A DNA stretch of 64,000 bases from Mobula hypostoma (GCF_963921235.1 NC_086102.1:44082001-44146000), one strand, 5' to 3'. Shown: positions 11,125 through 62,292, counted from the stretch's first letter. Notes: a model not told the origin generated them from the letters alone. A program made the numbers and translations.

Positions 11125-11273
11125 CTACAGAGCAACAGTCCTAACCAGGTTCTGGTATGAGCTACCATGCAGTGCTCCAGAGCATTCCGAATCCTTACTC
11201 GGATTTCCACAACAGGACCAATGTGGATGGCCAGGATGAGTTTTATGTCCATGTCCGCAGCCTTGAAACCCAC
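11125..11273 (-). CDS. TRIM45: TRIM45 coding exon 6 (last, with stop)
   Basis: GGTAG|GT GGG TTT...; GGFQGCGHGHKTHPGHPHWSCCGNPSKDSECSGALHGSSYQNLVRTVAL* (TAG 11127-11125). The six exons total 1695 nt = 564 aa + stop. Confidence 0.95.
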
Positions 11274-12349
11274 CTACCAATCAAAGGCAAAGAGACAGTG
11301 TTGTTAACAGAATAACGCCAGTAAACCTCATGTAAAGCCACGTCAGAAAAACATTTACAGCAATACACGCAAAATGCTGGAGGAACTCAACGGGCCAGGC
11401 AGCATCTATGTAAAGGAAGAAACATTTGAAATTTTTAAAAATCAAGTGCTGCCAGGATAATCAAGGACACGCCCCACCCAGCCAACACACTTTTCGACCC
11501 TCTTCTCTCAGGGAGAAGGCTCAGGAGCTTGAAGACTCGTACGGCCAGATTCGGGAACAGCTTCTTTCCAACTGTGATAAGACTGCTGAACGGATCCTGA
11601 CCTGGATCTGGGCCGTACCCTCCAAATATCTGGACCTGCCTCTCAGTTTTTTTGCGCTATCTGACTTCCCATTTTTCTATTTATGGTTTATAATTTAAAT
11701 TTTTAATATTTACTAATTTTTACTATTTTTAATATTTAATATTTGTAATCCAGGGAGCGGGAAGCGCAGAATCAAATATCACTGTGATGATTGTACGTTC
11801 TAGTATCAATTGTTTGGTGATAATAAAGTATAATCATTTTCATTGTCTTCAAATACATGTTCCATCAAGGACAAAAAAGATTTGGTTCATAAAGTTTCTT
11901 CATGTATAAAATTTCATATAAATATATATTTAACAAATTTACACTTCACATTTTGCCTTGTGGCACCACTTAACACAGGAAAGTCATTTCAAATAATGAG
12001 ATATCCTGTGTCGAAGCACTTGTTTTAGTTCCTTCCCCACCCATCTTGTCAGACTCTTCATTATGTTGAAATCTATGAAGTTCAAAATTTGATGTAAATT
12101 TATTATCGAAGTACATATATGTCACCGTATACAACCATGAAAAAAATCTCTATATTTCTGAATCTGAACTCTGATTTCTGAATAAAATCAGAAAGAAAAA
12201 CCTTCCCTTATTAACCTGTCAATCAGTTCGAACAGAGTCTTCATCCTCACATTCATCGTGTTTCTCTTCCCACAGGTGCGTGACCTGCTGAATGGTTCCA
12301 GCACTTTCTGTTTTTATTTATTAAAGAGAAAAGCATATTGAGTTTCTAA

Positions 12350-13670
12350 GGCAACACACACAAAATGCTGGAGGAAGTCAGCAGGTCAGGCAGCATCCAT
12401 AGAAATGAACAGCCGACATTTTGGGCCAAGACGCTTCCTCAGGACTGGAAAGGAAGCAGGAAGATAACAGAACAAAAAGGGGTGGGGGAGAATAACTAGA
12501 AGGTGATAGGTGAAGCTAGGTGGGTGGGAAAGGTCAAAGGCTGGAGAAGAAGGACTCTGATAGGAGAGAAGAGGGGACGATAAGAGGAAGTGAAGGAGTA
12601 GCACCAAGGGTGGGGGAGGGGCATGTGGGAAGGTTAAGGGAACATGAGAGTAGAGGCAGAAATAGAAGAGGGAAGTGGGGGGGGGGGGATTTTTTTTTTT
12701 AACCAAAGCAGAAATCAATATTCAAGCCATCTGGTTGAAGGCCACCCAGATGGAATATAAGATGTTGTCCCTCCGACCTGAGTGTTGCCTCATTGTGGCA
12801 CAAGAGGAGGCCATGGACCGACATGTTGGAATGGGAATGGGAATCAGAATTAAAATGTTTGGCCACCGTGAATTTCCGCTTTTGCCAGATGGAGTATAGG
12901 TACTTGATAAAGCAATCCCCCAATGGACAACCCCAGCAGATTCACAGGTGAAGCATTACCACCTTGAAGGACTGTTTGGGGCCCTTAATTGAGGTGAGGG
13001 AGGAGGTGAATGGGTAGGTGTAGCACTTAGGCCGCTTGCAGGGTTCGGTGCCAGGAGGGAGATTAGCAGCGAGGCACGAATGGACAAGAGAATCATGGAG
13101 GGAGTGATTCCTGTGGAAAGCAGGGGTGGGTGGGAGAGGAGGTCAAGATGTTGGGTGGTAGGATGCCTTTGGAGATGGCTGCAGTTGTGGAGATTGATGA
13201 GTTGGATGCAGAGGCTAACGGGATGTTAGCGAAGGACAAGAGGAACTCTATCACCGTTAAGGCAGTGGGAAGACGGGGTGAGCGTGAATTTTCGAGAAAT
13301 GGAGGAGGTGTGAGTGAGGACAACATCAATTGTGGAAGAAGGGAAACCCTGCTCCTAGAAGAAGTATAGGTACTTGATAAAGCTCTGATGTTCTGGAAAG
13401 GAAAGTTTCATCCTGGGAATAGATGCAGTTGAGAGGAAGGAACTGAGAAAAGGGAACAGCATTTTTGCAGGAGACAGGGTGGGAAGAGGAATAGTCAAGA
13501 TATTTGTGGAAACTGGTAGGTTTATAAAAGATGTTAGTCAGCAGTTCATCTCCGGAGATGGAGACAGAGAGCTCGAGAAAGGGGAGGAAGATGTCAGAGA
13601 TGGGCCAAGTGAATTTAAGAACAGGGTCGAAGTTGGAGGCAAAGTTGACGAAACTGATGAGTTCAGCATG
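12350..13670 (-). mobile_element. Penelope-like element fragment
   Basis: HFNSDSHSHSNMSVHGLL...EGQHLIFHLGGLQPDGLNIDF; same pLTR as 35.7-36.05 kb. Confidence 0.85.
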
Positions 13671-13879
13671 AATTACTTTTCTATAGATTTGTTAAGTATG
13701 TTTGCAGAAAAAGAATCTCAGGGTTATAAGTGCTGACGTGTGTACTCTGAGGTTTACTTTACAAAGTTGATGAAATTGACAAGCTCAGCATGAATTACTT
13801 TAAACTTGTCCGAAGCACTGAACAAATTCTGCCATAATTTAGATATTAGGGAGGGAAAAACAATATTTGCAGAACAATT

Positions 13880-14160
13880 CCCTCAAAATGCTGGAGGAGC
13901 TCAGCAGGGCAGGCAGCATCTATGAAAAAGATTAAACAGTCACGCTTCAGGCCGAGAACCTTCATCAGGACTGGAAAATTATGAGAAGTCAAGGCACCTT
14001 CTTGCTCTGACTTCTCATCTTTCTTTCCCCTGTCCTAATGAAGGGTCTCGGCCCGAAACATCGACTGTACTCTTTTCCATAGATGCTGCCTAGCCTGTTG
14101 AGTTCCTCCAGCATTCTGTGTGTGTTGCTTGGATTTCTAGCATCTGCAGATTTTCTTGTG
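13880..14160. mobile_element. Palindromic mini-element of two inverted Penelope pLTR halves
   Basis: AATGCTGGAGGAGCTCAGCAG...CTTCATCAGGAC / GTCCTAATGAAGGGTCTCGGCCCGAAAC...GAGTTCCTCCAGCATT. Confidence 0.75.
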
Positions 14161-14309
14161 TTAATATTTGCAGATCACTGTTAAGTTTTGATCCTTCGGC
14201 TTATTTACTCACTATTACACAGCCTCTAAATCTGACAATTAATTGCAAATTATTGCAAAAGAAGTGTTGATGAGGCACTATAAGAGACCAGGCATTTTAT
14301 CAAGCTCAC

Positions 14310-14436
14310 CTGGCATTGTCCCTTTGCAGCCACAATGGACATCCTTTTGTCCACCACTGGAGCAGAATGTGCAGCAGTGGAATATGCCAACATGCTCACG
14401 GAATTTGCCTTCTACCGTTACGGTGAATGGGGAACC
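14310..14436 (-). CDS. TRIM45: TRIM45 coding exon 5
   Basis: TTTTCTAG|GGT TCC CCA...; GSPFTVTVEGKFREHVGIFHCCTFCSSGGQKDVHCGCKGTMP; donor CCAG|GTGAGC; 127 nt. Confidence 0.95.
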
Positions 14437-18318: not shown

Positions 18319-18430
18319 CTGTACATGCTGTCCATTTACACAGACCCACGCCACATACGAGCCTGACATCTGAGGTGTATATATAATTCGATAAGTTCCA
18401 TCATGATTATCTTGCAGTGTTGTTTTGATA
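18319..18430 (-). CDS. TRIM45: TRIM45 coding exon 4 (filamin-type repeat)
   Basis: CCACAG|T ATC AAA...; IKTTLQDNHDGTYRIIYTPQMSGSYVAWVCVNGQHVQ; donor CAG|GTGGGT; 112 nt. Not in the ORF track. Confidence 0.94.
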
Positions 18431-19290
18431 CTGTGGATTGAAATAATAGATGACCGGCATATTCAGAGTAAATACTTTCAGTGAAGCAATGGAGTACTGT
18501 TGAGGTGTCCCTCTTTCCAAACCAGAGATGAAAATGCTGATTCTGATGCAAGCGGATACAAGAATTAGTACAAATACTGTCAAATTTTCAGTGAAAGGAT
18601 ATAAAGAAATCTTAGTCATAGAGTAATACAGTATGGAATTAGGCCCTGCAGAAAGATGCTCACAGGTTCGAAGAACTGTCTTAAAGTATTGGAGGCAATG
18701 TTTCATTTTTCATCAATCCTTACTGGAAATGAGTGGCAAGGTATTTGAGAGTTAACTATAATGGTGAGTTTGAAGTCATACATTGGCCGAACTAGGTGGG
18801 AACAAAGTGACAATGGCAGGGACGATTACAATGTTTAAAAGCTATTTGGACACTTAGATGGATAGGAGAGGTTTTGAGAGATATGGGTCAAATATAGGCA
18901 AATGGAATTAGTGTAGATAGGGAGTTAGGTTGGGATGGAAAAGTTGAGCTAAAGGGTTTGTGAACAACTCTATGATGGGATTCTTCTCCTGAAGAACAGT
19001 AGAGAACCAGATGGGGTTTGCACTCATCTCCATCATTATTAACGCCTAACTTTTTTTTTCAAATCCCAAATTATTAACTGAATATTAACTGCTACCATAG
19101 TGGTACGGGTCTAGCAAGTTAACTATTGCAAATATAAAAATCAGAATCAAATTAACCTAATTTATATTTGGGAATGGAAGTTACATTAATTAACTACTCA
19201 CCCAAGTTTAAACTGCTTAAAATAGCAAGACACCTACAGTATATTAGAGATGAATTTACCTTCCTGCTCACTTTCTTGCAAGTTACCCAC

Positions 19291-19420
19291 CATTCTTTTT
19301 TATTCTTATTGAAGATGCTCACTCGAATAGATTCACTTCCCCTTCCCATCTTCTGGCCCGATTGGTCATTGCAGACTAGTGTGAAAGTACTTGGCTGGTC
19401 TTGTTGAGCCACATGGAGAC
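19291..19420 (-). CDS. TRIM45: TRIM45 coding exon 3 (filamin-type repeat, N-part)
   Basis: TTCAG|GT CTC CAT...; GLHVAQQDQPSTFTLVCNDQSGQKMGRGSESIRVSIFNKNKKE; donor TG|GTGGGT; 130 nt, phases 1/2 fit both neighbours. Confidence 0.93.
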
Positions 19421-20301
19421 CTGAACGACAGCAAATTGGACACGAGTTACCCAACTTGAAAGCAACGCCCAACCTTAAACCACTTATTCTTACTACTTAA
19501 ACAATGAGAAATCTGCATTTCATTAGTGTAATTTAATGCTCAGTGTGAAGCAAATTTGATCCAAGCCATTAAACACAGCCCACACTTCTCTCTGGGACGT
19601 GCTGTGATCTGTACAGTGTCAGTACGCAGCCCAGTGAAAACCAGAAGCTTCCTCTTGCAAGTCAAAGGACACTAAAAAGTAAGTTAAAAGGCGGCTAACA
19701 ATTCTTCTGAAAGACAAAAATAATCTCTATTTCTGCTTTCCCACACAGGGAACTCGTGTTCGTAAACAGCACCACTTATTCTGCTCCGTTTAATTTTGCA
19801 CCTTAACACCGAGATGAACCGACAGCACAGGAGACTGTCCCACACTTGTCCAGTAGGGACATACCCAGCTTCTGCTCCACCACAATAAATAGCAAATTGA
19901 AATGACGGGCTGCAATGTGCAAGAGTTCAATTCAACATTTAAAACCTTCTCCCAAGCCCTCACATTTAACGGCCACAAAGCAGTCACCATACTGGATGGA
20001 ATGAGTGCACTGTGACCCAGAAATGAGCAGATATCTCAACTCATATATTATAATCTCTAACTAGGGCACACAATTTCTGAAGTCCCACTTAACTTGAGGA
20101 TGGAAGAAATAAGTAAGGAAGTTTATGGCTTCAAAAAGCTGGAGTGCTAATTACCTTGAACACAGGTGTAAAAATCTGTCAATTTTGATATCAAATGAGA
20201 AACAATCTCATTAATCTCATGAGATCTCATTAACCTCAGTCACTTAATGGTTTTACAGGAATTAATTCAGGATAAGACTGACATTAATTCTGGATACATA
20301 G

Positions 20302-27245: not shown

Positions 27246-29070
27246 TTTTTTATGTTGAACTTCCAGCTGCTGCATTCACTCCCTGGGTGGTCTGCAGACA
27301 TGAACCTGCCAGATCTGAAATTCACTAGTTCTTTAAAACGACTCCAAACAATGGTACTCACTGCAGTCTCTGAGGCTGCAGATTTCAGCTGTGGTAAAGT
27401 GGGAATACTTGACGACTCCCTTGGGAGCTGCACACAAAAAGTCACTACTCTTTGGAGTCCCGCCGAAGGGTTTCGGCCTGATACATCGACTATACTCTTT
27501 TCATAGATGCTGCCTGGCCTGCTGAGTTCTCCAGCATTTTGTGTGTGGTGCACCATTTTTCAGACCCTTCTTAGCAATATTAAAAAGCTTTTAACTTCTT
27601 CCAAGATTGGCCTTTAGGCAAGCTTTCAGTACGGTAACATAAAGACAGTCAGTGATCAGAGATGTTTGAGAAGTACATACTGGCACTATGGAATAAATCT
27701 GGAAACTTTTTTCTTCACATAGCACTACAACTCTAATGAAGAACCACCAATAAATGATAAGGACAAACTCCTGGAGATATTCAGTTCTGGATTTAGCTGT
27801 GTGGGGGCGGTGGGGGGGGGGTTTAAAATCAGACACAATAAAATAAACATTTTCCAGCAAACGTTTGAACCATGACCTTATCATAACCAACAACCTGCTT
27901 TGTAACAGGGACACTCCTGCTGCAGCCAGTGAAACCTGCTAGATTATGTCGTTGTCTTATTGAGACTACAATTGATTGAAATGTCACATTGATGTCTACA
28001 TTGCCTCCAGCAATACAGATATGATAAGAACATAAAATGTGGAAACAAGAGGCCATTTGGCTCTTTATACTTGTTCTGCCATTCAATGAGATCGTGGTTG
28101 ATCTTTTACCTCAATGTTACTAACCTGCACCAACGCAATATCCCTCGATTTCCTTACTATCCAAATATCACTCTATCTTGATAACTGAGCCTCCACAACC
28201 AGAAAGTTTCACATTTTGGTGAATAAATTTCTTTTCATCCTTGTCTTGAATGTGAAACCTCTTATTTTGAGACTGTGACCCCCACCCCCACCCCCCCCAG
28301 CTCTAAACACTCCAATCAGGGAACATCAACAATATCTCCTCTGCCAAATCACCTTCAGAACCTGGTCAGACCACATTTGGAGCACTGTAAGCAGTTTTGG
28401 GGCCCCATATCTAGGAAAGGATGTGCTGGCATTGGAAAGGATTGAGAAGATGTTTACAAGAATTATCCTAGGAATGAAAGAGATAACATATGAAAAGCAT
28501 TTGATGGTTCTGGACCTGTACTCACTGGAGTTTAGAAGAATGGGCAGGTGGGGGGAAACTCACTGAAATCTAACAAATATTGAAAGGCCTGGATAGAGTG
28601 GATGTGGAGAGGATGTTTCCAAAGAGGGAGTCTAGGATCACAGGCACAGCCTCAGAATAGAAAGAAGTCCCTTTAGAACGGAGATGAGGAGGAATTTAGC
28701 TAGATGGAGGTGAATCAGAGGAATTTATTGTCACAGGCGGCTGTGTCAAGTCATTGGGCGTATTTAAAATGGAGGTTGGTAAGTTCGTGATTAGTAATGG
28801 CACCAAAGATTACGGGGAGAAGGCAGGAGAATGTGGTTGAGAGGGAAGATAGATCAGCCATGATTAAATGTGGAGCATTCTCAATGGGCCAGATGGCCTA
28901 ATTTTGCTTCTATGTCTTAAATGCTTCCTCTAAACTCAACATTATATAAGTGTAGTCTGTATAATCTCTTCTGATATGATCAATCCATTATCATTATCAT
29001 CAAAAAAAAAACAGCTGACAGATTTTAAAGTGATACAAGTGCTGTTAAATACTCTGTCCTTGTCTCTTAC

Positions 29071-29807
29071 CTTCACCCTGAAGGATGCACTTGGTGGGAT
29101 CAATGGTTTTTGTGGTAATGATCCCAAACACCTCAAATCCATCACACTGGCCAGCTCTCTCTTGTGAATGGAACTGAATCCAGTCATCCTCTCCGGGCGG
29201 AGTGCTGTAACTAATCTCATTCAGTTGCTTCAACCTGTTGACTACTACACACTCGGTTAACAAGATTTCCCCAGGAGAGCCATTCGTCAACAAGCTCTCT
29301 GTAAAGTCTACCCCAGTCTTGACATCTGCCAGGATTTGTTCCAACTGGATCTGATGTAGATTGAGCGAGTTCTCCTTCTGCATTTTCAGTTCTTCCAGCT
29401 CTTTCAAAAGCCTGTTCCGATGTTTCTCCAGTGCCTTGATGTAGTCCTCTGTAAAACTATTAATTTCTTCTGTTATATTGCTCAACTGCTCTTTTAGAAT
29501 CAGTCTAGAGTTGTGAATTTTTTGTATGTTCTCCTGTAGAACACCAATACGTGGCTGTGTTTTTTTCAGAAGCTGCTTGATTGACTTGCCGTGTTCGTTA
29601 ATGACATTGGTGATAAAGTCACAGTTGTGGTCTTGATGACCCACAATACAACAGTCTCTGCAGACCAGACAATCGCACGTCTCACAAAACAACCTCAGTT
29701 CCTCTGAAGGATGAGCAGAGCACATGATGGATTGTACAATTCTCCCAGTTCCACCTTGCAGGTCCTTCAGTGCCACCAAGTTATGACTAGCAGTCGCTCT
29801 CTGCCTC
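29071..29807 (-). CDS. TRIM45: TRIM45 coding exon 2 (B-box 2, coiled coil)
   Basis: Acceptor TTTCCGCAG|G; RRQRATASHNLVALKDL...CSAHPSEELRLFCETCDCLVCRDC...DPTKCILQGE; donor GAAG|GTAAG (phase 1); 737 nt. Confidence 0.97.
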
Positions 29808-30775
29808 CTGCGGAAAGAATTAGTTTTAAAACACTTCCGGACCAACTAACTACATTTTTAATAAGATTGATATCATCTTAAAATTACAATACTTCATCAG
29901 ATGGAAATAATTGAAAACTTTCAAATAACGATGAGCCAGAGTACAGGAAGGAGATAAGGAGCCTAGTTACATAGAGTCATAACAATCTTCCCCTCAATGA
30001 CAACAAAAGACCTGGGCACTGATTTCGCTAATAATCTGTACTGGTCTAAACACGTAGACAGCAGGGCCAAGTGCCTCTATTTCCTTCTGAGGCTAAATAA
30101 TCTGACATAACCACTTTGACCCTCACTAATTTGTAGAGATGCACTTTAGAAAGCATCCTATCAGGATGCGCCACAGTTTAACATGACAGCTGCTCTCCTT
30201 TAGACTGCAAGAAACTGCAGACACAACTCAGCAAATCACAGAAACCAACTTCCGGCCCAGGGATTTATCTGCACTTCTCACTGCCTCCGTAAAGCAGTCA
30301 AAGGCCCCAACCCACACTGCACATCCTCTCTTCTCCCCCTCCCAACAGTCAGAAGATACAAAGCAGCGCCACCAGGCTCAGGGACGGCTTCCATCCCGCT
30401 GCTAATGGTCCCCAAGTTATGATAAGATGGATTCATATCCTCCTTACCTCATAACCCACTTCGTTATAACCTTATTGTCCCATCTGCTGTTCACTGTAAC
30501 ATTACATTCTGCATTCTTGTTTCCTCTGACCACCTCAATGCATGTCATGCAAAATAGGTTTTTCACAGTTCCTCAGTAACAAACCAATTTACCAAACAGG
30601 TTGCTTCCTATCATTTAACTGGATGGTACCCAAACATTAAACTTTATAATGAAGAGACATCCATTCCAATACCTTTCCTCTAAGTTTACAAACTATTCTG
30701 TCTATACAAAAAACTATTGGAAGATGAATGCTAGGTGAGTGAACAAAATGCAAACACCAATTCAAATAGGCTTAC

Positions 30776-31215: not shown

Positions 31216-31619
31216 TTTCACGGAGGTTTTTCAAATCTACAAAAATCAAAATTCAAGTTGCTAAGATCTCAGCACACCAAAAACGCAACGTTAAACTATA
31301 ATAATCACTACAATTAATCGTTTAGATCTTATTTCTTCACTTGGCCTACTTCAGATCAGAATCAGTGTTATTAATTGACCCAGATTCACGAAAGTGTTTC
31401 GGCTTTGAAACGAACCATCTGCTTCCCTCTACAATACCCAATGAAGAATATTAGAATTCTAGAATTTACTCCGTCCAGAAAAATCTCATTCACTTTTTCT
31501 TGTAGATTCTGCTGTGGGCAATTATAAGAATCAAATGTAGCCGAATAAGTACAACGTCTATAAATCACTATTGTTGAAAGTTAAAATAGTAGACAGAGAT
31601 CTGTTATGGTATAACCTAC

Positions 31620-39900: not shown

Positions 39901-39924
39901 CCAGTTTATAAAAAATATCATATG

Positions 39925-42900
39925 CTGTGGCAGTAAAGAAAGTTGATAGAGAGCAAAGGATAAGTAAAGAAAAGATTGGAACGATGGGGAGTCAGCACAT
40001 TCTGTGTTCTTCAACTATGGTTCCTTCAGACATGGTGTTGATGACTAAAGAGTCTTTTTTGGCATTTGTTGTTGATGTACTGGTCGGGGCTAAAACTACA
40101 ACCAAGAGGTCGGATATGATAAAAGTAGTTGTTGAAGCTGCAGAGAGATTCCCTGGTATGAAACAGGTTTTACCGGAAAAATTACATGAGTATATGACAG
40201 ACAAATAATCACTGAATACTTCCCAGCTGTCGGGGTCAGAGAGTACGGAGGAGCTTTATGTGGATGAAAATGCCAATAATTAGAATTTGGATGTTTTTAA
40301 TATTACAATGGAATGCAAGAAGTTTAATTGCAAATGGTCAAGAATTAAAAAGATTTGTTGGAACTTTTAAAGACAAGCTTGATTTGATCTGTGTACAGGA
40401 GACATGGTTAAAGCCTCATCCAGGGATCACAAAATCTAAATATGATAGTTTGAGAGCTGACAGAACAGGTAAATCTGGTGGAGGGTGTGCAACTTTCATA
40501 AAAACAGGACTTCAGTTTAGAAGACTTGATTTTAAATCTCACCTTGAAATGATGGCTGTGGAGGCTTGGCGCTCTCGTGGTCAAACAACTTTGATTAACG
40601 CTTATAATCCATGTAATATGATGATGTTATCAGATTGTGATGAAATTATGAATAAGGTAAGATCCCCAGTAATCTGGGTTGGAGATTTCAATGCCCATAA
40701 TCCTATATGGGGTAGTGAAAGTTAAGATAGTAATGGAGCGGTAGTAGAGGAGTTTCTAGACAAATTCAACATGGTATTTCTAAATGACGGAAGGCCTACA
40801 AGATTTAATATTATAAAGAATACTTGTAGTCACTTAGACTTATCAATCTCTTCCTCAAACTTAGCCAGGATCAGGGAATGGGATGTTATGGACAGATACA
40901 CACTAGGAAGTGATCACTATCCTATATTATGTAGATTTGGTAGAAATTTGATAGTAGAAGTTGAGGAGAGGGCTGCTTGGTATAACTTTTCTTTGGCCCA
41001 TTGGGATTAGTACCAGGAGAAAGCTGTGGATATCATAGAAGAGATTGATAGCGAGGGCTCCATAGACGATTGGAATGAATCCCTCTGTTCTATACTTCAT
41101 AAAGTTGCTCAGTTGACTATTCCACTACGGAATGTTCCTAAGGCTCGAGCATTCGTTCCATGGTAGAATAAAAATTGTGATATATAAACCCATATAAACT
41201 ATCTAACAATTACAGCATGGATACAGGCCATCTCGGCCCTTCTAGTCCGTGCCGAACTCTTACACACACCTAGTTCCACCGACCTGCACTCAGCCCATAA
41301 CCCTCAATTCCTTTCCTGTCCATATAGCTATCCAATTTAACTTTAAATGACAACATCAAACCTGCCTCAACCACTTCTGCTGGATGCTCATTCCACACAG
41401 CTACCACTCTCTGAGAAAAGAAGTTCCCCCTCAAGTTACCCCTAAACTTTTGCCCTTTACTCTCAACTTATGTCCTCTTGTTGGAATCTCCCCCACTCTC
41501 AATGGAAAAAGCCTATCCATGTCAACTCTATCTATCCCCTTCAAGTCCCCCCTCAACCTTCTACGTTCCAAAGAATAAAGACCCAACTTGTTCAACCTTT
41601 CTCTGTAACTTAGGTGATGAAACCCAGGTAACGTTCTGGTAAATCTTCTACATACTCTCTCTATTTTGTTGACATGTTTCCTACAACTCGGTGACCAAAA
41701 TTGTACACAATACTCCAAATTTGGCCTCACCAATGCCTTGCACAATTTCAACATTACATCCCAACTCCCATACTCAACACTCTAATTTATAAAGGCCAGC
41801 ATTCCAAAAGCTTTCTTCACCACCCTATCTACATGAGATTCCGCCTTCAGGGAACTATGCACCATTATTCCTAGATCTCTCTGTTCTACTGCATTCTTCA
41901 ATGCCCTACCATTTACCATGTATGTCCTATTTCGATTAGTCCTACCAAAACGTAGCATCTCACATTTATCAGCATTAAACTCCATCTGCCATCTTTTAGC
42001 CCATTCTTCTAACTGGCCTAAATCTCTCTGCAAGCTTTGAAATCCTATTTCATTATCCACAACTCCACCAATCTTAGTATCATCTGCATACTTACTCATC
42101 CAATTTACCACCCCATCATCCAGATCATTAATGTATATGACAAATAACACTGGACCCAGTACAGATCCATGAGGCACACCATTAGTCACTGGCCTCCAAT
42201 CTGACAAACAGTTATCCACCACTACTCTCTGGCGTCTCTTATCCAGCCACTGCTGAATCCATTTTACTACTTCAATACTTATACCTAACGATTGAACCTT
42301 CCTAACCAACCTTCCGTGTGGGACCTTGTCAAAGGCCTTACTGCAGTCCATATAGTCAACATCCACCGCTTTACCCTTGTCAACTTTCCTAGTAACCTCT
42401 TCAAAAAATTCAATAAGATTTGTCAAACATGACCTTTCCCGCACAAATCCATGTTGACTGTTCCTAATCTGACCCCGTCTATCTAGATAATTATATATAC
42501 CATCTCTAAGAATACTCTCCAGCAATTTACCCACCACTGACGTCAAACTCACAGGCCGATAATTGCTAGGCTTACTATTAGACCCCCTTTTTAAACAATG
42601 GAGCAACATGAGCAATATGCCAATCCTCCAGTACCATCCCCGTTTCTAATGACATTTGAAATATTTCTGTCAGAGCCCCTGCTATTTCCACACTAACTTC
42701 CCTCAAGGTCCTAGGGAATATCCTGTCAGGACCCGGAGACTTATTCTTTAGTATTCCTTAAAAGCTCCAGTACTTCCTCTTCTTTAATCATCATAGTTTC
42801 CATAAATTCCCTACCTGTTTCCCCTGTCTTACACAATTCAATATCCTTCTCCTTAGTGAATACCGAAGAAAAGAGATTGTTCAGAATCTCCCCCATCTCT

Positions 42901-43920
42901 TTTGGCTCCACACATAGCTGTCCACTCTGATTCTCTAAGGGACCAATTTTATCCCTCACTATCCTTTTGCTATTAATATAACGGTAGAAACCCTTGGGAT
43001 TAATTTTCACCTTACTTGCCAAAGCAACCTCGTATCTTCTTCTAGCTTTTCTAATTTCTTTCTTAAGATTCTTTAAGAAATAGCAGTAAGAAACAGAAAT
43101 AGAGCTTACAGGAAATTAAGAAAGTACCCAGTGTTAGATAATGTTATGGAATATAAAAAGGAAAGAGCAGTAGCAAGGAGAGTAATTAAAAATGCAAAGG
43201 GGGATAGTTGGAGAAGATTTTGTGGAAGCCTGGGCCCTGAGGCACCTATAAAGCAGCTATGGACAATCAATCACAGAATGTCAGGGATATATAGAAACCC
43301 ATCTATCCCAGCTTTGCTGGAAGGAGATGTTGAAGCTGTAACCAATAAGGAAAAGGCTGATATGTTTGTAGAGGTGTTCCAAGCGTTACACAGTTCTGGA
43401 GAGCCAGGTGATTTGAGAAAGGAAATTATGTTAAAGGAAAGTTGGAAAGTGGACAGGAGTTTGAATGATAATAGCTCCATAAACTTGTTTTACTACCTTC
43501 AGGAATTGCAGGAAGCAATCCAATCAGGTTCAAACACTTCTCCTGGTAGGGATGGACTGTGTTATGAATTGCTTAAGCATTTAGATGATTCTGTATTAAT
43601 AGAAATGCTAGCTTTGTTTAATTCAGTGTGGAAAGAAGGAAAATTGCCAGTAGAATGGAAGCATGCAGTGGTAGTTCCAGTTTTAAAGCCAGGTAAAGAC
43701 GCGTCTAATCCTAGTTTGCATCAGCCTATAGCTTTAACATCAGTGCTTTGTAAAACTATGGAACGAATGATCCCTAACAGACTTGTTTATTTTTTAGAAA
43801 ATAAGGGACATTTTGCTGCCTATCAAAATGGTTTTAGAACTGGAAGATCAACAATGGAATCTGTTGCTCTTTTAGATCATGATATTTAAAAAGCGTTTCA
43901 AAATAGAGAAGTAATGGTAA
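39925..43920 (+). mobile_element. Nimb/I-clade-like LINE fragment split by a minus-strand CR1
   Basis: ORF1 tail (KVVVEAAERF), ORF2 ILQWNARSL, GDFNAHNPIWG, LNDGRPTR, GSDHYPI, SPGRDG, WKHAVVVPVLKPGKD; reading continues across the insert (KNCDI|AVRNRNRAY). Clade assignment is from motif recall. Confidence 0.75.
41183..43078 (-). mobile_element. 5'-truncated CR1 nested in the Nimb-like LINE
   Basis: ORF 41782-42615: NYRPVSLTS, KAFDKVPH, YADDTK; CR1 3' UTR toward 41190. Confidence 0.9.
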
Positions 43921-43928
43921 TGATACGA

Positions 43929-45066
43929 ACTAGGCTTGGGTTCTTCGAGGCAAGGACATGACGAGGCTTGGGTTTTTCGAGGCGAGGACATGACGAGGCT
44001 TGGGTTCTTCGAGGCGAGGACATGTCGAGGCTTGGGTTCTTCAAGGCGAGGACATGACGAGGCTTGGGTTCTTCGAGGTGAGGACATGACGAGGCTTGGG
44101 TTCGGACTCCAAGCCAGAGACTGGACAAGGACCCAGAACCTTGGTCTTGACTCGGGCTCGGACTCCGGAACTAGGCGAAGACATGACGTGGTTTTGGGAG
44201 ATAGGACTAGGCAAGGCTACAGGACAGATCGAGAGACTCCTGGGCGGGACAAGGCAACTCCAGGACAGGACGACAGAAAACTCGGAACCTTGGACTTGGG
44301 ACGACAGGAATGCAGAACACAGAGCCTTTGGTCTTGGGGAGTGCGGAAACACGGAGCCTTGGTCTTGGGGAGCGCATGAACACAGGGACGGGGAACACAG
44401 AGCCAGGACCCCTCCTTAGGAACAGGACGTAGGGCCAGGACTCATACACAGAATACTGAACATGACGAGATTGTTTGCATCACTAGGTAGAGGCAAACGG
44501 CCAGACCTACCTGGCAAAGGCGTGGACACAGAGACGGTTCCCAACACTAGGTAGCAGCAAATGGCCAGACCTACCTAGCGAAGGCATGGACACAGAGATA
44601 GTTCCAACTCAACGATAGACAGTTCCTTATCTTGACACTGCAAGGCTCTGGTCTCACTCCAGTGGTTGAACTCGACAAGGTTGTGGGCAAGGCTCCAGAC
44701 ACAGGTTGCAGGCAAGGCTCCAGAAGGAAGGGGAAGGGGAAGGGAAGGGAACAGTCCAGCCTCAGGGTAACAGCAAAGATGGCCTGGCTTACCTAATGGA
44801 GTCAAGGACAGGAAGGGACAGATCCAACTGCAGGGTAACAGCAAAGACAGCCTGACTTACCCCACAGAGGCGAGGACAGGATACTGACAAGACAAACCAG
44901 CAACCACACTTGAACCCAGGGCCACTTATATTCCCAACCCAAGATGAGCATCAGGTGCCTATGATTGAGCCCAACTGAAACAAGGGACAGCCGGAAAACC
45001 CAGATTCCGGAGTCCACCGACCAGACCGTAAACTGGAACGTGGACTTCATGGACTGGACCATGACA
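43929..45066. mobile_element. Partial LTR-type element with internal 32-bp tandem repeat (43933-44103)
   Basis: Homologous to 58570-59675, ends CATGACA; unit GAGGCGAGGACATGACGAGGCTTGGGTTCTTC about 5.4 times. Confidence 0.75.
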
Positions 45067-48057
45067 ATATCCACTCCCATCTCTTTTTTTACTCTTTACA
45101 TATCTGAAAATCTTTAACATCCTCTTTTATATGATTGGCTAGCTTACCTTCATATTTCATCTTTTCTCTCCTTATGGCTTTTTCGTTGCCTTCTGTTGGT
45201 TTTTAAAAGCTTCACAATCCACTAACAATCCCACTAAATTTTGCTCTATTATATGCCCTCTCTTTTTGTTTTTATGCTGTCTTTGACTTTGCTTGTCAGC
45301 CATGCTCGGCTCATCCTCTCTTCACAACACTATTTCATCTTTGGAATGTATCTGTCCTGTGCTTTCCACATTGCTCCCAGAAACTCTATTCATTGTTGTT
45401 CTGCTGTCATCCCTGCTGGTGTCCCCTTCCAATCAACTGTGGCCTGCTCCTTTCTCATGCCTCTGTAATTCCCTTTACTCCACTGTCATACTGACACATT
45501 TGATTTTATCGTCTCCTTCTGCAGATTGAATTCTCTCATTTATGATCACTGCTTCCTAAGAGTTTCTTTATCTTAAGCTCCCTCATCAAATCTGGTTTAT
45601 TACACAACAGCTAATTGTGAATTGCCTTTTCACCTATGGGCTCAACCACAAGTTGCTCTAAAAAGCAATCTCATAGGCATTCTACAAATTCCCTTTCTTG
45701 GGATCTGGCACCAACATGTAGCCACAGAATCACTTTTCCTTTCCCCTACTATTGAGTCTCCTATCACTACTGCTCTGCCCAACTTTACCCTTCCCCGCTA
45801 GCCTCAGAGCTGGCCTCACTGTTGCCGCTGTACCCTGGTAGGTCACTCCTAGTCCCAGCGGTATCCAAGGGGTTTACTTGTCATTGGGGGGAGGTGGGAA
45901 TGGCCACAGGGGAAACCCTGCACTGACTAATTTCTCCCTTTACTTCTGGTGGTCTCCCATCTACTATCTGAAGCCTGTACACCTGTGTACATCCAGCTCT
46001 AGTTCCATTTCCTTGACCTTGTCAGTCAGCAGCTGAAGTTGAATGCACTTCCTGCAGATGTAGTGACCAGCAAGAGTGTCAGGTACCCTGAAAGCCCACA
46101 TCTCTCAGCAGCAGCATTCCACTGCTTAAACTACTATCCTGCCTACACTTGTTATACCTCTGACTGTTCATACTTAAGCTCTAGCCTCTGTCTGTTCTCA
46201 CCTAAGCCTGTTGAGCCAAAGTCTAACACTGTTCGGTCACACAATGGTCACTCAGCTTACACCCCACTTCTCTTTATTGGCCCCTGCCGAGTGCCTAAAG
46301 GATTGCGAAGATAGCATCTCTCCAAATAGTTCCAAATGTTCCCAAGCTCCTTTTAAATCTTACATAGCCGAACCAACCAACGATTCTCACAATGATTGCA
46401 GCCTGTCGAAAATACCAAAAGATCTCAAGCTCCTCGCCAACAGCCTCTCGCTTGGCCTCTGGAATTCCAAGAATCAAGTTTATTTATGATGTCGACATTG
46501 AAATATACAGTGAAATGCATCATTTCCGTTAACAACCAACACACCCGAGAGCGTGCTGGAAGCAGTCCACACTTGTTGCCACATATTCCGGTATAAAATA
46601 GCATGCCCACAATGTTGTCAGTTTGATTGCCTGCTCCACTCTCTAAAAATTCACAAGTTTCTGTTTGCTACTAATCTTTGTTCTAAAACAGCATCACAGT
46701 TAACTGCCTCAGACCTGCATATTTGAAATGGCTAAGTTAATTTGTCCACCACAGCTGACGTTTGTATTCAACCACGTTTATTTTGTGTTAGGGCTTGCCT
46801 GCTCCAGCCTGTCACCCTTTATGGCATAGCTTGTTTTGTTTTCCACTTATTGGTAAAAAAAAATTATCCTGGAAACAATTTTACCAAAATTCAGATGTTT
46901 AAATCAAGGAATTTTTAAAGGCAATATATGAATGTTTTATATATTTTGGCTCAGTTACCCTTTCTCATAAACCAACTTGTATTTCCCGTTTAGTTTAGTC
47001 ATGCTGAATTTGCTGAATTACAAGCTCATATTTCACTGGTCACTTATCCTTCAGTCTGATTAATTAACAAGATAACGGGAGGTCCAGGTGGGGAGCTCTT
47101 TGCCTTTTGGCTGACAGAAAGAGATCCGTCCAACCGTTTTGGATGTGGCAAATTCATTAATGTGACGTGGCGAAATTCATAGTAAGCTAAACGTCAAGCC
47201 TTATCCGTAACATTGAACATAAAATTGAACTGAGCTGCATGTGTTGATTGTAGAAAAAGGTTACATATATGTGAGAGGCAATTTGGGTCAGGAAACGATC
47301 TCGAATCACCTGGCTCTGAGTCTCTGGTGGACGAACATACTTGATGACCCAGATATTTAATTATTTTTTCATTGTGTTACTTTCCTTGCACTTGTCTGCT
47401 TTCTCTGTGACTGTGACACTGTTCTGCATTCTGTTTTCCTTTTAACTATCTCAGCGTAATTATGCAGGGAAGAATCCGGCTGGCTGGCACACAGTACAAA
47501 AACTTTTCGATGTATTTCAGTACGCATGGCAATAATATACCCAAAGCAACAAGTTGTTTTGCTGGCGAAGGGTCTCGGCCTGAAACGTCGACTGCACCTC
47601 TTCCTAGAGATGCTGCCTGGCCTGCTGTGTTCACCAGCAACTTTGATGTGTGTTGCATGAATTTCCAGCATCTGCAGAATTCCTCGTGTTTAAGTTGTAT
47701 TGCTGGTGGCATTCGCTGTCTGTTAGGTGCTAAGGCAGTGGAATTTTGTGCACTTTCGCTGTTGTTTCGTGGTCCACTTCCCAGGACAGGGGAAATAAAA
47801 GCATTCCGATCCAAATATGATGTAGGCAAGGTAATTACGAAGCCACTTTCTAAGTAAAACAAAGGAAGCTTACTGCTGATATTGATTTTATGTATGTTTT
47901 GAAACACTACATTAAGCGAACCGTTCTTTATTGCCAATGGAATAAAAGGAAGTTCTGGTTCCTTCTCATGGACAGTTCACGCCTTCACCGCTGCTGTCTT
48001 CTACTCCAGTTTTCCTTCCATAATTTGCAGTCTTGTTGCTGATGGCGGTCATCGCAG

Positions 48058-48337
48058 GGCTCGCTGTCAGTCTAAAAATTGTCAAGTCCCCTACGGTTTT
48101 GACCCTTCTTCGAGGGCAAACAGCTCGAATCATTTGCCCCTGCGAATTGAGGAGGAGCCGGAGGATCGGGCGGGAATGGTCTCGGTCGCCAGGCGGTTCC
48201 GGGATTGGCAGCTGGAAATTCTTGAAGACAGGCATTCAGCAGCCTGAGGGCTCGCTGGTCATTCAGGATTTTTCACAGAGGGTGGTGGGCACATGGCTTC
48301 GCCACGTCTAGGTTGGGTTTTCCTTTTGTGACCCGAG
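48058..48337 (+). pseudogene. Degenerate paralogous V exon (VJ-C1 family pseudogene)
   Basis: GLAVSLKIVKSPTVLTLLRGQTARIIC...W...GSWKFLKTG...PEGSLVIQ aligns with the 60.3-kb V exon; second Cys and J motif lost, stop at 48309-48311; upstream intron and downstream 49.2-49.62 kb are also paralogous. Confidence 0.85.
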
Positions 48338-48519
48338 GTAATTAGATAAACCAACACCCAAACAAACCCCTGTACGGGGAAGATTTAAAAAAGTGCTGCT
48401 GATACAACAGCTCCACGACTTCGGTGGGCGGCAGGGTCGATCATGCAGATTTCCAAAAGTTCACTGAAAGAGAGGCGGTTAAAATGCAACACTCCGACCG
48501 CTTTTGCAACGCCAACAAG

Positions 48520-49173
48520 ATCTCTGAGGATCTAAGCTGGCCCAACATATTGATGTAGTTATAAACAAGGCAAGTCAGCGGCTATACTTCATTAGGAGTT
48601 TGAAGAGATTTGGCATGTTAACAAATACACTCAAAAATTTCTATAGTTGTATCATGGAGAGCATTCTGACAGGCTGCATCACTGTCTGGTATGGAGGGGC
48701 TACTGCAAAGGACCGAAAGAAGCTGCAGAGGGTTGTAGATCTAGTCAGCTCCATCTTGGGTACTAGCCTACAAAGTACCCAGGACATCTTCAAGGAGCGG
48801 TGTCTCAGAAAGGCAGCGCACATTATCAAGGACCTCCAGCACCCAGGGCATGCCCTTTTCTCACTGTTACCATCAGGTAGGAGGTACAGAAGCCTGAAGG
48901 CACACACTCAGCGATTCAGGAACAGCTTCTTCCCCTCTGCCATTCGATTTCTAAATGGTCATTGAATCTTTGGATGCTACCTCACTTCTTTTAATATACA
49001 GTATTTCTGTTTTTGCACATGTTTTTTTAAAATCTATTCAATATACATATACTGTAATTGATTTACTTGTTTATATATATATATATTTAGATTATGTATT
49101 GCATTGAACTGCTGCTGCTAAGTTAACAAATTTCACGTCACATGCCGGTGATAATAAACCTGATTCTGATTCT
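48520..49173 (+). mobile_element. Rex1-like LINE 3' fragment inside the V pseudogene's downstream intron
   Basis: ESILTGCITVWYG, HPGHALFSLLPSGRRYRS; AATAAA + (GATTCT)n tail. Confidence 0.85.
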
Positions 49174-50794
49174 GAAATCTGTTAAATACCAGCGGGATTG
49201 GTAATGGGGAATCGAAACCGTGAAACGTCCTTGTTGGGACACACTGCCAGTGTAATTTGCATCTTGTGACGAAAGTGTGCGTGGTCGAAAGGAGATGAAA
49301 AATAGAACTAGGAAGTGCTGGAAATTCTCAGCAGGTCAGGTCGCAAATGCGGAGAGAGAAGCAGTTAAAGTTTCATATTGAAAACCCTTCGTCAGAACAC
49401 TGACCTGAAACTTTAAGTCTGTTTCTCTGCTGTTTCAGATTTTAATTCCAGATCTCCGGTAACTGCCTTTGTTTATTCTCACTCGCTGTAAAACTTCGAA
49501 TTCATTACTTTCCCGGGCTGTATTTTATTTCTCTTCCTGCCGGCATACATCTTGAGACACAAACTAATCAATTCAGTTTACATCGTTTCCTTTGTATCCG
49601 TGCACCGTCTTCAGTTGTGTCCACACGTGGAAGTGGAGAGCATATTTCTTAAGTGTCGGGGTATCCAGACTAGAGGGCACAGCCTCAAAATTGAGGAACA
49701 ACCCTTTAGAACAGTGGTAAGGAGGAATTCTTTTAACCAGAGGGTAGTAAATCTATGGAATGCTCTGCCACAGACTGCGGTGGAGGTCAAGTCCATGCGT
49801 ATACTTAAAGCAGAGGGGGAGGGGGAAAGTCGACTCAGACCATGAGAGGCCTGTGTCGGGCATTTTCATGCCTTACAAGGCGCAGACTGGAAGTTGATCA
49901 TTTCCTGATCGGCCAGGGCATCAAAGGATGTGACAAGAAGGCAGGTGTATGGGGTTGAGTGGGATCTGGGATCAGCCATGATGGAATGGTGGAGCAGACT
50001 CAATGGGCTGAATGGCCTAATTCTGATCCTATGTCTTATGGTCTTATGGATCTAATTACTGAAATGGCAGCTGAGGAGCACTTTGGGTCCTGTGGAACTT
50101 TAATGTCCATTTCTCCTCTGTGTTTACTAAGAAGAATATCATGGATTCCAGGGAAATGAATTTAAAAAGTAATGAATCTTGGATCATTTGCTTATTATGA
50201 GGGAGGAGGTATTTGTAGTCTTCAAGTGCATTAAGGTGGGCCTGAATAAGGGCATCCCCAGACCTTATGGGAGCCCCAGTGAAGATATCACAAAACCCCT
50301 GTTTGCTTTGTTGTTAGCTATTGTCAAAGTTCCAGAAGACTGGGGGGTAGAGGGTTCAAGAATGGTAACGAAGATTGGCCAGGGGACTACACACTGGTGA
50401 ACTTGATTAAACTGTACAGAAGTTATTGGAGTGTCTTCTGTAGGTCAAGTTCCACAATCACTTATGTAGATAGTCATGACCTGACCAGGAATGGTCAGCA
50501 TGGATTTGTGCATGGGAGGAAATAACTGAGGAAGCTTTGGAGTTTTTCCCAAAGAGGTAACTAAGGGAATAGATGAAGGTAGGATAATGAATGTTGTCTA
50601 TACATTTACATGACAAGGTCCTGCATGGCAGGATTATGTCGGAGGTTAGGTTGCATAATATTCATGGAGAGGTAGTGAGGTGGATTCAGAATTGGTTTGA
50701 TGATAGGAAGCAGATGGTGTTAGTTGAAGGACCTTTGTTATTCATTATTTATTTAAATGATATAAATGTACATGCATGATCAATAAGTTTGCTG

Positions 50795-58005: not shown

Positions 58006-58060
58006 CAGCCATGCATTCAGTTAAACTTCCAGTCAGTCTGTTGCCGATGTGACACATTAA

Positions 58061-60156: not shown

Positions 60157-60205
60157 ATGTCACTACTCGGAAACTTACTGTACACGCTCTGGCTGTTTCT
60201 TCCGG
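60157..60205 (+). CDS. Leader exon of VJ-C1 IgSF gene
   Basis: CCCAAC ATG; MSLLGNLLYTLWLFLP + G|GTAATT phase-1 donor; a 93-nt intron joins it in frame to GPAVA, completing a hydrophobic signal peptide. Confidence 0.85.
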
Positions 60206-60298
60206 GTAATTCAAGCGCTCTCTCCGTTTGACATTTATTCTCGTTGCCTTCTCATAATTTTGAATCTTTTTGCTAATTGCGATAATTTTCTGTTCTAG

Positions 60299-60631
60299 GG
60301 CCCGCTGTTGCTCTGAAAGTGAACCAGACACCTTCAGCTCTGACCCTTCTCCGAGGACAGACAGCTCGGATCGGCTGTTCCCTGTTATCCGGGGACGAGC
60401 GGGTGGATTCGGTGAGATATTTTTGGACGCGGACACCAGACAAACCTGTACACGGGTCCAGTAATTTCTTGAAAAATGGCACTCGGATTTCTCTGTCCAG
60501 GTCTGAAGGCTGGCTGGTCATTCGCGAGGTGACTATGGATGACTCTGACACCTACCATTGCTCAGCGCTGAGAATGGGTTCGGGCCCCTGGAAAACATAT
60601 TTTGGAATCGGAACAGAAGTAACCATCCGAG
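60299..60631 (+). CDS. Germline-joined VJ-type Ig domain exon (non-rearranging antigen-receptor-like)
   Basis: Acceptor TTTTCTGTTCTAG|GG; B-strand Cys (RIGC), C-strand Trp (YFW), DSDTYHC, J-like FGIGTEVTI in the same exon; donor CGAG|GTACAG; 333 nt, phase 1-1, no stops. Confidence 0.93.
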
Positions 60632-61233
60632 GTACAGTACGTATGAAATGAAACCAGTAAACACTGGAAATACTCAGCAGACTGGGCAAAGTGTGAAGCG
60701 AGGGAACTGGGGCCAAAGTCTCAGACCAATGGCCGAGCTGGAAAACGAGTCTTTAGGTCCCTTTCCCCAAACGCGCCCTGACCTGCTGAAGGAATCTTGT
60801 CTTCGCGGCGTTTGGTTTGTGTTTTGCTTCTGACCCAAAGTAACCGGATTAGCAACACCGAAACAATCTCCCGCATGGGGAAGAGAGAAGACTTGTCGCT
60901 GAATACATCAGCGCCACATCCCAAAAATTCAGTGGTAGAGAGGCGGGTAAAGGACCGACAAGAAATCGGTTAAACACTAGGGGGATTGGTAATGGCGATC
61001 GGAACCGCGAAACTTCCTTGTTGGGACACACTGCCAGTATATTGTGTATCCTGTGACCAATGTGTGCCTGGTCGAACGGAGCTGAAAAATAAAACTAGAA
61101 AGAGCTGGAAACACTCAGCAGGTCGCAAATGCGGAGAGGGAAACAGAGTTAACGTTTGGTATTGAAGACCTTTCGTCAGAACTCTTCTACTCTCCGACCT
61201 GACCTGCTGAATATTTGTTGGTTCTCTATACCT

Positions 61234-61366
61234 AGGTCTGAAGGCTGGCTGGTTATTCGCGAAGTAACTGCGGATGACTCTGACACTTAGCATTGCTCCG
61301 TTTTGTGAATGGATTCGAACTCCTGGAAAACATAGTTTGGGAGCGGAACAATAGTAAACATCCAAG
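61234..61366 (+). pseudogene. Duplicated 3' half of the VJ exon, decayed
   Basis: RSEGWLVIREVTADDSDT*HCSVL*MDSNSWKT*FGSGTIVNIQ, colinear with 60499-60631; three in-frame stops; donor CAAG|GTAAGT kept. Confidence 0.88.
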
Positions 61367-61998
61367 GTAAGTATGAAATGAAACCAGTAAAGGATGGGAT
61401 TGCTCGGCAGGCGAGGCAAGCGAGGGAACTGGAGCCAACGTCTCAGACCAATGGCCGAGCTGGAAGAAGATTCCTTTCTCCAAACGCGCCCTGACCTGCT
61501 GAAGGAATCCTTTGCTTCTGAACCGTGAAACGTCCAACAAGGAACGCACTAGGCAGCGTAATTGTAACTGTAACTGGCCGGGGTGTGCCTGGAAGAAAGA
61601 AACGGAAAGATAAAACCAGGACATGATGGAAACACTCGGGGCCCGTTGCTGATGAGAAACAAACGTTTGGTTTGAAGAACCTTCGTCAGAACTCTTCGAC
61701 CTGAGACCTTACGTCTGTTTCTCTTCCCAAAGTTGCGACCTTACCTGTTGGATATTTCCAGTGGTTACTGTTTTTAATTTTAGATTTTCACTTGCTGTAA
61801 TATTTCGAATTCGATCCGTTCCCGGGCTGTATTTTGTTTCTCTTCCTGACGGTGCATTTCGAGACTCAAAATAATCAACTCGATTCACATTGTTACCTTT
61901 GTATCGTGCACCGTCTTCAGTTGTGTCCACTCTTGCTGTCTGTATCAGTCTGGGTTACAGTAAAATTCACAATGTGTTAATTCTCCCGTTCTGTGCAG

Positions 61999-62292
61999 CG
62001 AAGCCTGACGTCTCCCTCTCTCTGGATCCCAAGAACGAAGCCGCTGGGATTCAAACCCTGACTTGTGTGGCGGCGGGATTTTTCCCGAAAGATCTGAGTA
62101 TTTCTTGGGCTGTAACGGGAGATGTCTCGTATGAAACAAAGGCGGGTCCGCTGTGGGTAAGCGAGGACCTTACCTACAGCCTGAGCTCCCGGCTGCGGGT
62201 GAACGACTCTCGGCGGGAGTCAGTTCCCGTCGCCACCTGCCTGGTTCGTCACGTTACAGGGAATGTGAGGACAAGTTTCACTTTCAACCGAG
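61999..62292 (+). CDS. C1-set Ig constant domain exon of the same gene
   Basis: Acceptor TTCTGTGCAG|CG; LTCVAAGFFPKDLSISW, TYSLSSRL, TCLVRH are C1-set hallmarks; donor CGAG|GTAGGT; 294 nt, phase 1-1, in frame with the VJ exon. Confidence 0.93.

Follow-up and report, generated by a model that had tools for sequence, protein, structure and literature searches.

A probable SIRP-like VJ-C1 receptor gene lying head-to-head with TRIM45 in the lesser devil ray and other cartilaginous fish

Analysis of a 64,000-nucleotide stretch of the genome of the lesser devil ray, Mobula hypostoma (GCF_963921235.1 NC_086102.1:44082001-44146000; this whole stretch is called the window, and coordinates are counted from its first letter), revealed that TRIM45, on the minus strand, and a receptor gene of the VJ-C1 type, on the plus strand, diverge from each other, with their 5' ends 29 kb apart. 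We consider it likely that the window is the devil-ray counterpart of the human 1p13 block, comprising TRIM45 together with a diverging, non-rearranging receptor gene of the SIRP type. What is new, in our opinion, is the conserved place of a SIRP-like VJ-C1 lineage in a 1p13-type block, together with a probable tetrapod member of the same family; no description of a TRIM45-linked VJ-C1 gene was found in the searchable literature. The divergent arrangement had already been claimed in an initial annotation of this DNA and is borne out by the six TRIM45 exons and the leader, VJ and C1 exons, which read on opposite strands. The exons of the VJ-C1 gene are the following:

60157..60205, plus strand: leader exon, MSLLGNLLYTLWLFLP, with a phase-1 donor G/gtaatt (sequence read; agrees with the N-terminus of Hypanus P0050)
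60299..60629, plus strand: VJ exon, holding the end of the leader and a V-set domain whose J-like G strand, YFGIGTEVTIR, is joined in the germline, both ends phase 1 (Pfam V-set, E-value 6.9e-9)
61999..62292, plus strand: C1-set exon, AKPDVSL...TFNR, with phase-1 acceptor and donor (Pfam C1-set, E-value 8.9e-11; sequence read)

The leader-VJ and VJ-C1 introns span 93 bp and 1.37 kb, respectively, and every splice junction of the gene in the window is phase 1. A split leader followed by a VJ and a C1 exon is the exon layout of antigen-receptor genes. The C1 exon closes with a splice donor, not a stop codon, and the gene runs past the window end; only the first three exons of this single intact VJ-C1 gene fall inside the window, and no further exon of it was recognisable between the C1 exon (62292) and the window end (64,000). 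The VJ exon is 82% identical to Hypanus P0013, and the C1 exon is 71-79% identical to the C1 of ray homologues.

As to the kind of receptor encoded, a family profile was searched against PDB, with scores compared both per contiguous stretch and summed. The best contiguous match of the profile was SIRP-alpha, with 85.5 bits over V plus C1, including the common GxGTxLxV-AKP junction, vs. 66.9 bits for the best single stretch of UrIg2, whose top summed rank reflects three C domains added together. SIRPs are the classic mammalian VJ-C1 receptors. On the strength of sequence comparison, we read the VJ-C1 gene as a SIRP-like receptor of the immunoglobulin (Ig) superfamily, not as a light chain, a B7 protein or a UrIg-type multi-C protein. 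Structure prediction gives a pairing of V and C1 domains that resembles light chains, SIRPs, tapasin-related protein and B7-H6; fold searches did not separate the V-C1 families, returning low template-modelling (TM) scores because the angle between the domains differs. Taken alone, the VJ exon had VNAR, T-cell receptor (TCR) V-alpha and light-chain V (VL) domains as its best PDB matches, and the C1 exon placed UrIg2 near the top of the PDB ranking.

The alternative that survives best, unlikely as we hold it to be, is that the gene represents a third ohnologue of the UrIg/UrIg2 lineage, i.e. a relic of the antigen-receptor precursor on the chromosome-1 major histocompatibility complex (MHC) paralogon. 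UrIg, in the MHC class III region, and UrIg2, in the Ig/TCR complex, are non-rearranging VJ-C1 genes of elasmobranchs (PMC12227049), with a split leader, a single VJ exon and C1-type domains as their hallmarks (PMC12227049), and their map positions underlie a published model that derives antigen receptors from an ancestor of the chromosome 6 and 9/14 MHC paralogons (PMC12227049, PMC10751288). TRIM45, VTCN1 and SIRP are not mentioned in PMC12227049 or in PMC10751288. The devil-ray gene displays all three hallmarks, UrIg2 obtains the highest summed PDB score with the family profile besides its high rank with the C1 exon, and the locus belongs to a block that the initial annotation relates to MHC paralogons. 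However, that summed score draws on three C domains, with the best stretch reaching 66.9 bits against the 85.5 bits of SIRP-alpha over V and C1, and the relatives of the gene possess one or two C1 domains, a membrane anchor and either tails with immunoreceptor tyrosine-based inhibitory motifs (ITIMs) or a charged anchor, not the build of a multi-C homodimer. The proposal that an antigen-receptor precursor is preserved at this locus was overstated, given that the relatives, with tails bearing ITIMs or immunoreceptor tyrosine-based switch motifs (ITSMs) or with charged anchors, are membrane receptors closest to SIRP-alpha.

The SIRP-like reading draws further on these relatives. An exhaustive search of the VJ exon against 1.8 billion proteins, grouped as representative clusters, returned only four close clusters, namely:

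Hypanus sabinus: 82% V identity, E-value 1e-49
Pristis pectinata: 69% V identity, E-value 6e-30
Scyliorhinus canicula: 50% V identity, E-value 1e-19
Narcine bancroftii: 48% V identity, E-value 1e-18

With four close clusters among so many proteins, the TRIM45-linked V lineage therefore forms a distinct small subfamily. Its members are labelled here P0013 and P0050 (Hypanus), P0014, P0051 and P0052 (Pristis), P0015 (Scyliorhinus) and P0016 (Narcine); in RefSeq, those of Hypanus, Pristis and Scyliorhinus are called either 'signal-regulatory protein beta-1-like' or 'tyrosine-protein phosphatase non-receptor type substrate 1-like', and the Narcine protein 'uncharacterized'. Full-length relatives comprise a signal peptide, VJ, C1, a membrane anchor and then one of two tail types. 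There are two C1 domains in Hypanus P0050 and one in the Pristis, Scyliorhinus, Narcine and caecilian proteins, and the window shows one. By sequence motif, tyrosine tails of the ITIM/ITSM type are found in P0015 (LHYAPV, TEYAVL, VQYSAV and TIYASL), P0050 and P0051, and P0052 has a short tail with Arg-His inside the anchor, which reads VIVRHFIIVV. The ectodomains of Pristis P0051 and P0052 are 97% identical, with different anchors and tails, a combination that is the signature of paired receptors with opposite signalling ends and looks like a gene-converted activating/inhibitory pair. The sawfish gene that adjoins TRIM45 (L008:18449-25425) is the Arg-His form, P0052. Ectodomain identity to the Mobula gene mostly tracks the species tree (Hypanus 82%, Pristis 72%, Scyliorhinus 52%, Callorhinchus 45%), with Narcine, at 50%, being an outlier from that order.

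A more distant protein, P0049 of the caecilian Rhinatrema bivittatum (XP_029433897), matches the V exon weakly and comprises V, C1, an anchor and four tail tyrosines. Against the cartilaginous-fish genes its ectodomain reaches 73-110 bits, the highest with the chimaera gene, vs. no more than 63 bits against PDB, a ceiling that covers SIRP-alpha (55), UrIg2 (63, summed) and light chains. By these scores P0049 is clearly nearer to the cartilaginous-fish family than to any Ig, TCR, SIRP or UrIg2 chain of solved structure, and it is a probable tetrapod member of the family, which would then extend beyond cartilaginous fish; a word-indexed search with P0049 returned P0049 alone. P0049 and caecilian TRIM45 reside on one 81-Mb scaffold, separated by more than 10 kb and by 85 in accession number. 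Assuming a Rhinatrema genome of about 5 Gb, sharing a scaffold by chance would have a probability of ~1-2% for a single comparison, a figure that is suggestive only.

The conserved place of the gene is best exemplified by the sawfish Pristis pectinata (L006/L008), in which TRIM45 on the minus strand is followed by VJ-C1 P0052 on the plus strand and then by a 1195-residue SNF2 gene on the minus strand. TRIM45 and the 260-residue V-set/C1-set P0052 are head-to-head, 5.3 kb apart by annotation and ~14 kb when measured to the VJ exon, and the 1195-residue gene lies tail-to-tail with P0052, its last exons holding SNF2 motif VI, NPALEEQASDRIYRVGQ (found by pattern), and the ending FVCEGTIEDKIFELQEKKK...LFGV. 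We read this SNF2 ATPase as TTF2, based on its size, motif VI, its C-terminal sequence and what is known of TTF2; its terminal exon had no decisive match in Pfam or PDB, and an atlas search pointed to a helicase C-terminal region. In the chimaera Callorhinchus milii (L007; MU249835.1, ~12.227 Mb), the strand opposite TRIM45 carries a gene start whose split leader (5088-5058), VJ (4881-4552) and C1 (4076-3777) exons are open and apparently intact. These exons are unannotated and lie 4.9 kb head-to-head with TRIM45, and their identity to the ray and shark genes is 42-50%; no anchor or tail exon turned up in the 3.7 kb of DNA searched for them. The same chimaera contig harbors a second VJ-type V exon (L007:23114-23482; ...VYHCGV...SRGTRLFVTG) with one in-frame stop, 3.4 kb 3' of TRIM45 and on the same strand as TRIM45, which is only 25-28% identical to the VJ-C1 family. 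In Hypanus, TRIM45 (XP_059824343-45) and the VJ-C1 gene (XP_059824346-47) carry consecutive accessions and are on one chromosome, more than 10 kb apart. Adjacency of RefSeq accessions served as a proxy for position, which held for Pristis TRIM45 and P0052 and is not generally reliable, the near-identical P0051 being numbered ~560 away. The TRIM45 contig of the bird Urocolius (L001) had no Ig exon in the ~6 kb upstream of exon 1, which is all the DNA there, and short metagenome contigs with a TRIM45 exon (L002-L005) had no VJ or C1 match.

These comparisons show that a gene of the VJ-C1 lineage has adjoined TRIM45 since before the split of chimaeras and rays. The head-to-head pairing is present in both sawfish and chimaera, and the arrangement is therefore not due to a recent translocation, which we reject on the basis of the Pristis and Callorhinchus pairings. 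A related proposal, that adjacency to TRIM45 is accidental, with a member of a large, dispersed receptor family having recently landed there in the devil-ray lineage, might find comfort in a spacer full of young transposons and a dead copy nearby, but we give it very little credence in view of the same pairing in sawfish and chimaera with orthologue-like identities, and of a V lineage with just four close representative clusters among the 1.8 billion proteins. Of the synteny interpretation in the initial annotation, the old linkage with TRIM45 stands: a 1p13-type syntenic block is evident from TRIM45, VJ-C1 and the TTF2-like SNF2 gene in Pristis, and absence of a TRIM45-linked VJ-C1 gene from other taxa, named there as grounds for abandoning the idea, is contradicted by Pristis pectinata and Callorhinchus milii. 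The side of TRIM45 on which the gene was placed and the precursor gloss do not stand. That mammals appear to lack such a gene here, as also proposed there, is taken from the established annotation of the human genome.

With regard to that side, the gene had been said to occupy the place where human has VTCN1. Human gene order is PTGFRN-CD101-TTF2-TRIM45-VTCN1 (PMC11565109), and the devil-ray gene lies between TRIM45 and TTF2; in chicken, VTCN1 is found within ~72 kb of TRIM45 (PMC12934296). A gene model of the quail Callipepla squamata (P0089) fuses TRIM45, from B-box to filamin, to a complete VTCN1 (4gos, E-value 7e-49), which implies that, in a bird, VTCN1 follows TRIM45 on its 3' side and shares its strand. 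The VTCN1 part of this model found nothing significant anywhere in the window (best E-value 0.44). The ray VJ-C1 gene is in the TRIM45-TTF2 interval, not in VTCN1's place, and the region is collinear with the human order plus an extra gene; a VTCN1 of the ray's own is probably kept on the opposite side of TRIM45. Human TRIM45 is convergent with TTF2. If this orientation is right, TRIM45 would be inverted in mammals relative to ray and quail.

Two further identities we regard as having next to no chance. Although VTCN1 (B7-H4) likewise consists of a V and then a C domain and adjoins TRIM45 in human and chicken (PMC11565109, PMC12934296), with the quail model even fusing the two, orthology of the VJ-C1 gene to VTCN1 is rejected by sequence, as evidenced by: 1) the lack of a significant match to quail VTCN1 in the window (the E-value of 0.44 given above); 2) a C domain of the C1-set, vs. 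the butyrophilin-type C2-set_3 of VTCN1; 3) the absence of B7 proteins from the best sequence matches; and 4) a separate B7-like gene adjoining the Hypanus relative. A germline-joined Ig light-chain cluster, akin to cartilaginous-fish lambda, would fit the succession of leader, VJ, ~1.4-kb intron and C1, the light chains that are the top structural matches and an exon end, SFTFNR, reminiscent of the kappa chain C-terminus, but this identity is rejected since the reading frame extends past C1 through a phase-1 splice donor in place of a stop codon, every full-length relative continues to a membrane anchor and cytoplasmic tail, and frameworks 2 and 3 are unlike those of light chains.

Several observations weigh against our view of the window as a 1p13-type block with a SIRP-like gene. 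First, the anchor and tail of the Mobula gene lie beyond base 64000, and its signalling type and intactness rest on the Pristis orthologue. Second, searches with the V domain alone put VNAR, TCR and VL above SIRP. Third, the TTF2 identity of the Pristis gene comes with no named match. Fourth, the catshark (Scyliorhinus) relative is on the chromosome of TRIM45, with nothing within 10 kb of either gene. Lastly, upstream of the Hypanus VJ-C1 gene, a 237-residue gene whose V-set and butyrophilin-type C domains are the pair found in VTCN1 ends 8.7 kb away on the same strand; the Hypanus relative may therefore sit on the VTCN1/B7 side of TRIM45 and be a paralogue, not an orthologue.

Keeping to the SIRP-like reading, we surmise that the encoded protein would be a cell-surface receptor of the SIRP type whose V domain would bind a ligand. 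Inhibitory forms would signal by recruiting SH2 phosphatases, and activating forms would do so via an adaptor with an immunoreceptor tyrosine-based activation motif (ITAM), held by the charged residue of the anchor. By analogy with the Pristis orthologue, the Mobula copy adjoining TRIM45 is probably the activating form. The head-to-head layout would represent retained synteny and not a shared promoter, because the spacer consists of 29 kb of transposons in the ray and of ~5 kb in the chimaera.

We offer, as a tentative scenario that we hold possible and no better than that, that a SIRP-like VJ-C1 gene was located in the TRIM45-TTF2 interval near B7-H4 in the ancestor of jawed vertebrates, was kept in cartilaginous fish and, on the chromosome of TRIM45, in a caecilian, and was lost or moved in amniotes, with the tetrapod SIRPs of the 20p13 type descending from this locus. 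If this is true, non-rearranging VJ-C1 genes would occur in three MHC-paralogous regions, i.e. chromosome 6 (UrIg), 9/14 (UrIg2) and 1 (the ray gene), and the VJ-C1 unit would be older than the two genome duplications. SIRPs sit outside the current precursor models, which are based on UrIg and UrIg2; the TRIM45-linked lineage, in a block where B7-H4, IGSF3 and CD101 are found too, provides a concrete anchor for where SIRP-type receptors arose, one that can be checked in public genomes, and lets one test whether the VJ-C1 unit predates the genome duplications.

The partner gene accounts for the other end of the interval. The M. hypostoma RefSeq TRIM45 protein (P0164, XP_062905931) matches six minus-strand coding exons at 11125-31215 by tblastn, with 98-100% identity wherever the match stays inside an exon, and the stop codon at 11125 coincides with the start coordinate of the feature under study. 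These exons are:

11125..11274, minus strand: last coding exon (6) with the stop codon (P0164 residues 516-564, 100% identity; tblastn match 11274-11128)
14308..14436, minus strand: exon 5, C-terminal part of the filamin repeat (P0164 residues 474-516, 100%; bird TRIM45 P0012 matches too)
18319..18426, minus strand: exon 4, filamin repeat (P0164 residues 438-473, 100% identity)
19284..19421, minus strand: exon 3, with approximate boundaries, where the filamin repeat starts (tblastn matches to P0164 and P0012)
29054..29809, minus strand: exon 2, B-box 2 and coiled coil (Pfam zf-B_box, E-value 1.7e-7; P0164 residues 147-398, 98%)
30775..31215, minus strand: coding part of exon 1, RING and B-box 1 (Pfam RING families; P0164 residues 1-147, 100%)

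The domain content is that of TRIM45, with Pfam RING and B-box matches on the two large exons, and filamin and C-terminal exons to which both bird and ray TRIM45 align. The name TRIM45 is carried by hundreds of homologues, including all the close ones across vertebrates; we assign the minus-strand gene to TRIM45 by its orthology to these named proteins. Within a TRIM45 intron, positions 16138-16568 form a 99% tandem repeat with copies offset by multiples of 50 bp.

The window as a whole is retroelement-rich vertebrate DNA. Between and within the two genes, we recognized decayed VJ-C1 material and transposon remains, as follows:

31216..47990, no strand assigned: spacer of transposon remains, including Penelope-like GIY-YIG, long interspersed nuclear element (LINE) endonuclease and reverse transcriptase, and low-complexity repeats (open reading frame (ORF) list, Pfam, self-comparison)
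47991..49626, plus strand: dead VJ-C1 paralogue with a decayed V exon (tblastn, 37-40% identity to family V domains; DNA alignment; no Pfam match)
61204..61383, plus strand: half-V pseudo-exon lying within the J-C intron and interrupted by three stop codons (tblastn match of 60 residues at 63% identity; translation)

What had been described as a cluster of VJ-C1 copies amounts to one intact gene, the copy at 48 kb being dead and the piece at 61.2 kb a half-V pseudo-exon. The dead paralogue (48-49.6 kb) can be aligned across the leader intron plus two thirds of the V exon, with deletions of 1, 5 and 12 nucleotides and with the second, F-strand Cys and the J motif gone; a retroelement sits in it at ~48350-49150, and it ends inside a remnant of the J-C intron, before any C1 exon. 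By self-comparison, 49216-49624 is 71% identical to 61521-61930. The half-V pseudo-exon belongs to a tandem duplication of ~0.9 kb, in which 60489-60796 and 61222-61509 are 79% identical (self-comparison). It is echoed in the sawfish gene by a partial V-like piece upstream of the VJ exon (L008:16918-17109), 60% identical to residues 34-98. In addition, two repeat blocks ~70% alike, open in several phases and encoding Gly/Arg/Thr-rich repeats, are found at 43936-44419 and 58706-59305, one upstream of each VJ copy, a pairing that hints at an origin of the two VJ copies from a segmental duplication of ~12-14 kb.

The earlier statement that no other gene intervenes between TRIM45 and the VJ-C1 gene agrees with our analysis of the 29-kb spacer, in which no host gene was recognized by ORF list and Pfam and VTCN1 had no match; the sizeable ORFs are all transposon-derived or low-complexity, encoding reverse transcriptase, apurinic/apyrimidinic endonuclease, GIY-YIG or low-complexity sequence. 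Within this spacer, inverted copies at 34293-34914 and 35435-36056, 98.7% identical, flank a Penelope-like element with a GIY-YIG nuclease ORF (34890-35666), and a relative of these copies, 79% identical, lies at 55688-56391.

Among known systems, the SIRP family (SIRP-alpha, -beta and -gamma; human 20p13) offers the closest parallel. In both, one exon encodes the V domain together with its joined J-like strand, C1-set domain(s) come next, and the J-C junction reads GxGTxLxV and then AKP; both have paired ITIM-bearing inhibitory and charged-anchor activating forms with near-identical ectodomains, as seen in the Pristis relatives, and SIRP-alpha is the best contiguous sequence match among solved structures. 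In contrast to SIRPs, which have two C1 domains (V-C1-C1), most members of the ray gene's family have one, identity to SIRP-alpha is only ~20-25%, and the ray gene resides in a TRIM45/TTF2 block of the 1p13 type, not in the block syntenic with the SIRP cluster. UrIg and UrIg2 share with the ray gene the split leader, the single VJ exon, the C1-type constant domain and the lack of rearrangement, as well as a genome block related in the initial annotation to MHC paralogons. However, the ray gene maps by TRIM45 and a TTF2-like gene, outside both the MHC class III region and the Ig/TCR complex. C domains number four to eleven in UrIg and UrIg2, which are disulfide-linked homodimers, whereas the ray gene's family has one or two C1 domains and signalling tails, and its per-domain similarity to them is weaker than that to SIRP-alpha. 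VTCN1 (B7-H4), whose gene neighbours TRIM45 in human and birds, is also a membrane protein made of V and C domains, but has no detectable sequence relationship to the ray gene beyond the Ig fold and lies on the opposite side of TRIM45, and rays appear to have a B7-H4-like gene of their own (the 237-residue Hypanus gene). PRARP (2019), which PMC10751288 cites as MHC-linked, is similar to the ray gene in that both are non-rearranging Ig-superfamily genes with a joined VJ-type V domain and apparently without a mammalian counterpart.

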